A stretch of 64,000 bases of DNA from Epithemia pelagica. Taxonomy: Eukaryota > Protista > Bacillariophyta. Positions 50,115-51,445 of the stretch are shown piece after piece. Position 1 is the stretch's first letter; each line of letters begins with the position of its first letter. The position numbers were made by a program, and so were the translations under genes. The stretch spans positions 124,001 to 188,000 of the forward strand of contig OX337241.1 of NCBI GenBank assembly GCA_946965045.2, given 5' to 3'. The notes under the pieces were generated by a model that did no database searches, was not told where the DNA came from, and worked only from the letters and a program-made list of their open reading frames with translations.

Positions 50115-51445
50115 TTAGGCGACGACAGAAGGAGCAGTCATGGCCACGGGCAAGACTTCGCCACTGGCCAAATCCAAGGGAAAGTTGTGGGCATTGCGTT
50201 CGTGCATGACTTCCATACCCAAATCGGCGCGGTTGATAATGTCGGCCCAGGTGTTGATGACACGGCCCTGAGAGTCAATGACGGCTTGGTTAAAGTTGAA
50301 ACCGTTCAAGTTAAAGGCCATGGTGGACACACCCATGGCAGTCAACCAGATACCAATCACGGGCCAGGCGGCCAAGAAAAAGTGCAAGGCACGCGAGTTG
50401 TTGAAGGAAGCGTATTAGAAGATGAGACGACCAAAGTATCCGTGAGCGGCAACAATGTTGTAGGTTTCTTCTTCTTGACCAAACTTGTAACCGTAGTTGG
50501 TGGATTCGCTTTCAGTGGTTTCGCGAATCAAGGAGGAAGTGACCAAGGAACCGTGCATGGCCGAAAAAAGGGATCCGCCAAAGACACCGGCAACACCAGC
50601 CATGTGGAAGGGGTGCATCAAAATGTTGTGTTCGGCTTGGAAGACCAACATAAAGTTAAAGGTTCCGGAGATACCAAGGGGCATACCATCAGAGAAGGAT
50701 CCTTGTCCAATGGGGTAGTTGAGGAACACAGCAGTGGCGGCGGCTACGGGGGCCGAAAAGGCGGTAAAGATCCAAGGACGCATACCCAAACGGTAGGACA
50801 GTTCCCATTCACGGCCCATGTAGGCGGCCACACCAGTCAAAAAGTGCAAGACAATCAATTGGTATTCACCACCATTGTACAACCATTCATCCACCGAAGC
50901 GGCTTCCCAGATGGGGTACAAGTGCATGCCAATGGCGTTGGAGGAGGGGACAACGGCACCCGAAATAATGTTGTTACCGTACAACAAAGATCCAGCAACG
51001 GGTTCACGGATTCCATCAATATCGACTGTGGTAAAGCAACAATGTTAGTCCACTCATTTCTATTGTGGTATAATCTTTTCAACCAAGGAGCGCACGTACC
51101 AGGAGGGGCGGCGATGAAAGCCGTGATAAAACAAGTGGTGGCCGCAAGGAGAGTAGGGAACATGAGGGTTCCAAACCATCCAATGTAGAGACGGTTTTCC
51201 GTGCTGGTGATCCAGTTGCAGAACTTTTCCCAGACGGTCGCGGTGTTGCGCTTAGCCACACTGTTACTGGTATCGAGCGAGGCGGCGTTCAAGGCAAAGT
51301 CAGAAGTAGCTTCCTCGACATTGGAAGGGACAAAAGCAATCGCCGAAGAAGAGGAACGGGCCTGGGTGTTCAAGGGAGTGGGGGCCGTGAAGGCGTCAGC
51401 TTGAGAAGCCAAGAGGGTAGCAACGACGGCAAGGGCAAACTTCAT
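50115..51445 (-). CDS. psbA: Nucleus-encoded, plastid-targeted photosystem II D1 (exons 51100-51445 and 50115-51025; 418-codon precursor); in-frame TAA at D1 Q261 (50415-50417)
   Basis: Spliced translation is colinear with full-length D1 ([13 protein letters not shown]...AAPP|VDIDGIREP...[20 protein letters not shown]). It is preceded by [23 protein letters not shown]61, Y161, D170, E189, H190, H198, H215, S264, H272, H332, E333, D342 and A344 are all present. Confidence 0.97.
51026..51099 (-). other. 74-bp spliceosomal intron in psbA (phase 1, inside the Val58 codon)
   Basis: Donor G|GTACGT, branch-point GACTAAC (51044-51050) and acceptor CCACAG|TC. Splicing restores AAPP-V-DIDG. Confidence 0.95.

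Follow-up and report, generated by a model that had tools for sequence, protein, structure and literature searches.

Can a gene for the photosystem II (PSII) reaction-centre protein D1 reside and function in the nucleus of a diatom? The D1 gene psbA is a textbook plastid-retained gene, and its retention is cited for both the redox-control (CoRR) and the hydrophobicity explanations of organelle genomes. As a reaction-centre core subunit, D1 is generally taken to be restricted to plastid genomes. The 64-kb stretch of DNA analysed here (hereafter the window) nevertheless carries a psbA gene with a presequence, an intron and nuclear-type codons. From our analyses, we consider it likely that this gene belongs to an old, monophyletic family of functional, nuclear-encoded and plastid-targeted D1 proteins of raphid pennate diatoms, and that the copy in the window is a recent null or a very young pseudogene.

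Structure and setting of the psbA gene

The gene occupies 51445..50115 on the minus strand of the window, as judged from its reading frames and from splicing read from the sequence; all its parts given below are on this strand. It starts with an initiation codon and a putative signal peptide of 18 residues (51392..51445) with an ADA↓F cleavage motif, then FTAP. A transit-peptide-like region and linker (codons 19–58, 51272..51391) follow in place of the native D1 N-terminus. Exon 1 (51100..51445) comprises codons 1–115 and the first base of codon 116, and exon 2 (50115..51025) encodes the remaining part of D1 and a C-terminal extension, and includes the terminator. The phase-1 intron between them (51026..51099; 74 nt, GTACGT...CACAG) separates APP from VDIDG and contains ACTAAC at a branch-point-like position (51049..51044), 19 nt before the 3' splice site. 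It falls in Val58 of D1, where G and TC are joined to form the Val after FIAAPP, and removal of the 74 nt restores the exact D1 sequence (VDIDGIREP...). The spliced coding sequence of 1257 nt has 418 codons, specifying 58 extra N-terminal residues and then D1, and its terminal TAA is at 50117..50115.

A first-pass annotation of this DNA had described a bipartite presequence of 58 residues, composed of an 18-residue signal peptide and an FTAP transit peptide, as well as a GT-AG intron with a branch point. The spliced frame and the exact rejoining of D1 across the intron bear out both descriptions. The same annotation had called the D1 full-length, which is incorrect for the sequence as assembled: a premature in-frame TAA at codon 319 (50417..50415), the codon of D1 Gln261 between GRLIF and YASFNN, ends the frame 100 codons early.

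All three pieces of the gene matched the Pfam profile Photo_RC (PF00124), at profile positions 1–29, 34–207 and 213–255. The match in exon 1 spans residues 86–114, and the exon 2 part at 51023..50418 matched with E=4e-64. For the 202-residue middle piece, the best solved-structure matches were diatom PSII D1 chains (8iwh, 7vd5, 6j3y, 8j5k and 6jlu). When the stop is read as X, the cofactor and Mn4CaO5 ligands are all kept (Tyr161, His190, His198, His215, His272, Asp170, Glu189, His332, Glu333, His337, Asp342 and Ala344 were checked). The C-terminal extension past Ala344 (50118..50165) is of the red-lineage type. In canonical D1 the extension is cut off by the CtpA protease, and from knowledge of D1 maturation that of the nuclear D1 would likewise be trimmed after Ala344. 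A second psbA copy was not found within the 64-kb window.

In its codon usage, the gene matches the neighbouring long open reading frames (ORFs), which likewise prefer TTG, and not plastid psbA. It has no TTA, 23 TTG, 7 CTC and 37 GCC codons and a GC3 of 0.625, whereas a diatom-type plastid psbA used for contrast (locus L006, with the neighbours secA, rpl34, ccs1, psb28, groEL and dnaK) has a GC3 of 0.249 and uses TTA for 31 of its 32 Leu codons. Nucleotide identity between these two genes is 74%, and 207 of their 279 differences are at third codon positions. At the protein level, the mature region is 92.5% identical to that of a diatom-type plastid D1, and the Photo_RC domain, all ligands and the red-lineage C-terminal extension are shared. 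The window gene differs in its nuclear location and codons, its intron, its premature stop and the 58-residue presequence that replaces the native N-terminus.

The surroundings are also of nuclear type. GC content is uniform (44–55% over 64 kb), no tRNA genes, rRNA genes or Rfam matches were detected in the 64-kb window, and the ORFs around psbA include LRR and PUB/ubiquitin proteins, together with weak PPR-like ORFs. A scan of 49800..52000 yielded no bacterial-type promoter upstream of the psbA start; the single promoter-like site in this interval (49875..49903) is on the strand opposite psbA and at chance level. Nuclear-type codons and nuclear flanks had both been reported in the first-pass annotation, and our results agree. 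A misassembly or chimera, which it had named as a possible refutation, is contradicted by the synteny of the locus with a 453-kb contig of another assembly (L001).

Several other features of the window were observed. Just downstream of psbA, a 284-codon ORF (48968..49822) contains a perfect tandem repeat of two 54-nt units (49306-49414). L001 aligns there in overlapping pieces, which suggests a copy-number difference. A perfect tandem repeat of two 127-nt units is located at 26579-26832, a (TC)73 microsatellite at 8158-8304, and an array of G-rich repeats of 12–48 nt at 53074-53217. Four uninterrupted ORFs of 900–1250 codons are present on the minus strand (31154-34918, 36731-40063, 4884-7994 and 9482-12172). 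A Pfam search of these four gave no match except a weak PPR match in 31154-34918, and they are probably lineage-specific diatom genes. Exact-sequence look-ups of two ORFs of the window returned no match.

A family of nuclear D1 genes in raphid pennate diatoms

A search for orthologues in related diatoms, proposed in the first-pass annotation, revealed more than 100 database proteins in which the same presequence is fused to D1, some of them encoded on Mb-scale nuclear contigs. They belong to the genera Epithemia, Nitzschia, Pseudo-nitzschia, Amphora and Seminavis. With the presequence and first D1 residues as the query, approximately 75 protein clusters covering the whole presequence were retrieved. 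Further searches, for which the intact L001 exon 2 and a transcriptome protein served as queries, recovered full-length members of 414–457 aa. Epithemia clementina has at least six intact nuclear D1 copies on three contigs (ACA910_0155xx, ACA910_0216xx). Nitzschia inconspicua has two nuclear copies annotated as psbA on contigs of 3.5 and 4.2 Mb (e.g. KAG7368760.1, 'psbA'), and the gene on the 3.5-Mb contig is flanked by genes for MatE, a squalene-hopene-type cyclase (SQHop_cyclase domains), RasGEF and an M48 peptidase. Nuclear D1 orthologues are situated on contigs of 1.2–3.5 Mb. Other members were found in a Bacillariaceae MAG, Pseudo-nitzschia australis, another Pseudo-nitzschia, a Nitzschia transcriptome, Amphora coffeaeformis and Seminavis robusta, where the protein is labelled 'protein D1'. 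On these sequence grounds, nuclear D1 is a multi-copy family with a wide distribution among raphid pennates, and not private to one lineage.

The presequences have the features expected for import into a diatom plastid. An x-(E/D)-A↓F motif occurs in 112 of 116 family presequences, directly after residue 18 in 103 of them, and the first 22 residues past the cleavage site comprise 18% S, 15% A and 12% T and carry an average net charge of +2.2. By its composition and motif, the family presequence is thus predicted to be a standard diatom bipartite plastid-targeting signal of the ASAFAP type. Evidence of expression comes from related diatoms and not from the source organism itself, in the form of transcriptome-derived proteins (MMETSP/UniRef entries P0162, P0167, P0187, P0046 and P0357). 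These read unbroken from the presequence into D1, which indicates spliced mRNAs in those relatives.

Phylogenetic trees were calculated from a D1-core alignment with FastTree and, in reduced form, with IQ-TREE -fast and aLRT. The nuclear D1 sequences were monophyletic (FastTree support of 0.993 with 40 sequences and 0.90 with 45; IQ-TREE aLRT 86.5) and were placed next to or within diatom-type plastid D1. The window gene and its syntenic counterpart in L001 group with, and are sister to, the Epithemia copies, with 98% mature-protein identity. By this placement, the DNA probably derives from a relative of Epithemia within the Rhopalodiales or Surirellales, and E. clementina is the closest named relative. 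Each of the 40 nuclear sequences checked retains all 22 cofactor or key residues, and Ala344 and the C-terminal extension are conserved across the nuclear family. In the mature region, comparison of the window gene with Epithemia gives a dN/dS of 0.015 and with Nitzschia one of 0.05; synonymous sites are saturated (dS up to >1). The presequence evolves much faster than the mature part, with a higher dN/dS.

The nuclear family is set apart from diatom plastid D1 by few substitutions, namely three in helix A (Cys/Val35Thr, Thr43Ala and Ile50Thr), Val/Ile160Thr/Asn adjoining TyrZ and Ala357Ser. In nuclear D1, helices A and C have slightly lower Kyte-Doolittle averages; as the sequences are not independent of each other, this is no more than a hint of selection for less hydrophobic helices through import.

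Intron positions point to a long history as well. The phase-1 intron site between APP and V is common to the window gene, L001, a copy in another locus (L002) and an Epithemia copy (L005). In 32 further database ORFs of both subfamilies described below, the frame breaks after APP with G[KTM], which is the expected read-through of the donor site and thus implies the same intron. A second intron, between TY and N, is present in the Epithemia/L002 lineage and absent from the window gene and L001. The N. inconspicua gene (L004:8001-9576) has four introns, after precursor codons 162, 240, 258 and 361; none of these is at the APP–V site, and intron gain and loss in the family have therefore been extensive. 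Compared with the annotated nuclear genes of N. inconspicua, S. robusta and E. clementina, the window gene falls in the same clade and has the same presequence architecture, and it shares its intron site with Epithemia; those annotated genes are intact.

The presequence, the intron, the ameliorated codon usage, the monophyletic clade and the low dN/dS (0.015–0.05) together support an old functional transfer to the nucleus, with plastid psbA of the diatom type as its source. Monophyly, ligand conservation, low dN/dS and the shared intron site argue for one such transfer followed by long nuclear residence. The first-pass annotation had proposed a natural functional endosymbiotic transfer, with a phylogeny against plastid psbA and dN/dS among its checks. 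The single nuclear clade adjoining diatom-type plastid D1, the presequence and the dN/dS values, which are far from 1, uphold this proposal for the family; for the window copy as assembled, the stop codon leaves a functional product unsupported.

Within the nuclear clade, a divergent subfamily (B) forms a long nested branch that also has the APP–V intron. It comprises P0367 (S. robusta), P0363 (A. coffeaeformis), P0357 and P0358 and is characterized by 18 substitutions that are fixed and private to it, among them Pro162Ser and Ile163Met adjoining TyrZ, Phe186Leu and Tyr262Phe. The Seminavis copy differs from the window gene accordingly, and Amphora carries both subfamilies. Since all ligands are retained, the nuclear paralogues are not 'rogue' or 'sentinel' D1.

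The premature stop codon

L001 is collinear with the window over approximately 14 kb (window positions of about 42 to 56 kb), at roughly 88–96% identity, and the identity of psbA and its immediate flanks is approximately 96%. The psbA gene of L001 has the matching exon-intron structure and an open frame of 418 codons that ends with TAA. At position 50417, the window has T and L001 has C, which makes the L001 codon CAA (Gln). Gln at D1 position 261 is kept in the other 39 nuclear and in all 21 diatom-type plastid D1 sequences compared. Of the 22 differences between the two coding sequences, one is the nonsense change, two replace an amino acid (Ser31Thr, within the presequence, and Cys76Ser) and the others are synonymous; dN/dS in the mature region is 0.0175 at a dS of 0.071. 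The 99 codons beyond the stop contain six synonymous differences and no replacements, and the nonsense change is therefore either very young or an error.

Beyond the stop lie Ser264 of the QB site, His272, helix E and the Mn-binding residues His332, Glu333, His337, Asp342 and Ala344, and a product of the window gene without these could therefore not form an active centre. The first-pass annotation had envisaged the gene as a second supply of D1; this is not supported for the window copy, from which no complete D1 can be made as assembled. Since the stop is in the last exon, exon-junction-dependent decay of the mRNA would not be expected. Large ORFs of Copia-type (RVT_2) retrotransposons were observed upstream of nuclear psbA in two other loci (L001:474-5282 and L002:4287-9473); the alignment of the window with L001 covers the 4 kb adjoining psbA and ends before reaching the Copia-type element.

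Broken nuclear psbA copies are not restricted to the window: three of the six loci examined have one, each with a different lesion. The L002 gene (L002:11063-11406) has TAG at the codon of D1 Trp278 (near L002 11154), with approximately 82% nucleotide identity and a dN/dS of about 0.027 on either side of the TAG. In Epithemia, ACA910_015536 (L003:10393-10961) carries a deletion that shifts the frame, and its annotation divides it into two proteins. Apart from these lesions, both the L002 and the Epithemia gene are highly conserved. Repeated breakage fits a redundant multi-copy family that is backed by a plastid gene. Our best reading is that a single recent C-to-T change (CAA to TAA) has turned the window copy, as assembled, into a null allele or a very young pseudogene.

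It could be argued instead that the gene is intact in the organism, with the TAA representing a sequencing or assembly error or one of two heterozygous alleles, so that full-length D1 is made. The stop is only one base from the CAA of the syntenic copy, no replacement has accumulated in the 99 codons past it, and conservation is otherwise perfect. Yet substitution errors that create a stop within a coding sequence of 1.25 kb are rare in modern assemblies, and the independent lesions of L002 and L003 reveal frequent breakage in this family, which makes a genuine null allele likelier than a base-calling error. We thus regard an intact gene as unlikely, while giving it some weight. Decoding of the TAA, by readthrough or by a variant genetic code, would also yield full-length D1. 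TAA does encode Gln in some eukaryotic nuclear codes, and here it is found exactly at a conserved Gln codon. However, both the window gene and L001 terminate with TAA at the normal end of D1, L001 uses CAA at the site in question, and the stop in L002 is a TAG at a Trp position, so that no single reassignment fits. TAA-T is not known as a leaky stop context. The gene's own TAA terminator and the CAA in L001 make a recoded stop very unlikely.

Given that psbA is normally plastid-encoded and that the window copy has a stop codon, a non-functional insertion of plastid DNA (NUPT), contamination or a chimeric misassembly also had to be considered. Such origins can be ruled out with near certainty by an identity of only 74% to plastid psbA and the location of 207 of the 279 differences at third codon positions, by a GC3 of 0.625 against 0.249, by the presequence and the intron, by a dN/dS of approximately 0.02 and by synteny with the 453-kb contig; the orthologues on Mb-scale nuclear contigs and the lack of tRNA and rRNA genes in the window are also at odds with them. 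A recent lesion in one copy of an old nuclear family accordingly remains our preferred interpretation of the locus.

Possible role and significance of nuclear-encoded D1

We propose that the family originated when plastid psbA moved to the nucleus, where it would have gained a presequence, spliceosomal introns and nuclear codons and would then have undergone repeated duplication, all the while under strong purifying selection and without the loss of any cofactor ligand. Intact members are expected to be translated on cytosolic or ER ribosomes. The signal peptide would direct co-translational entry into the chloroplast ER, where its cleavage would expose Phe, and the transit peptide would mediate passage of the remaining three membranes (periplastidial and two inner). 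After removal of the presequence, D1 would be inserted in the thylakoid membrane, trimmed by CtpA after Ala344 and assembled into PSII alongside or instead of plastid-made D1. Import and assembly of nuclear D1 are plausible because engineered nuclear D1 works in plants (PMC10458752). It is conceivable, although we would not yet call it probable, that nuclear genes provide raphid pennates with a share of their PSII D1, which would be imported across four membranes. Such a dual supply would allow separate control, with the near-canonical subfamily A and the divergent subfamily B as a possible condition-specific isoform. The first-pass annotation had suggested that nuclear D1, imported across four membranes, serves PSII repair; both the import and this role are hypotheses.

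Transfers of plastid genes to the nucleus are known in diatoms, for example those of petF and petJ, as cited in PMC12412971, and the nuclear D1 family would reflect the same process, in which a plastid gene is relocated and acquires an ASAFAP-type bipartite presequence. It differs from petF and petJ in its cargo, a five-helix reaction-centre core subunit, and in that the plastid copy is retained; psbA is present in all diatom plastomes surveyed (PMC12412971). In rice, an engineered D1 of nuclear origin supplements the plastid supply (PMC10458752). That gene likewise combines nuclear D1 with a plastid-targeting peptide, but it is a laboratory construct whose product passes two envelope membranes, whereas the diatom family is natural, ancient and multi-copy, with passage of four membranes predicted. 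Cyanobacterial psbA multigene families resemble the diatom genes in having several D1 paralogues per organism, including a divergent subfamily with TyrZ-adjacent and QB-loop changes; unlike these, the diatom paralogues are split over two genomes.

A full-text literature search, mostly outside subscription journals, gave no description of a natural nuclear psbA in diatoms and no report of one in surirelloid diatoms, and turned up engineered plant nuclear D1 only. The family thus looks undescribed, although its sequences are public and some are labelled psbA or D1.

The narrower lesson of the window locus is that single copies are expendable and decay fast; the interest lies in the family and not in the broken copy. 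Endosymbiotic gene transfer is well known, and what is unusual here is a reaction-centre core subunit as its cargo. A conserved, selected, multi-copy nuclear D1 with targeting signals indicates that transfer of psbA is possible in nature, and makes the CoRR and hydrophobicity ideas testable in the culturable Nitzschia inconspicua, Seminavis robusta and Epithemia. The polar substitutions that the whole family shares in helices A and C may reflect the requirements for importing a five-helix protein, and for crop engineering with nuclear D1 the family offers a precedent from nature. If raphid pennates do have a dual D1 supply, they would provide a natural counter-example to the view that core subunits of PSII need to be encoded in the organelle.
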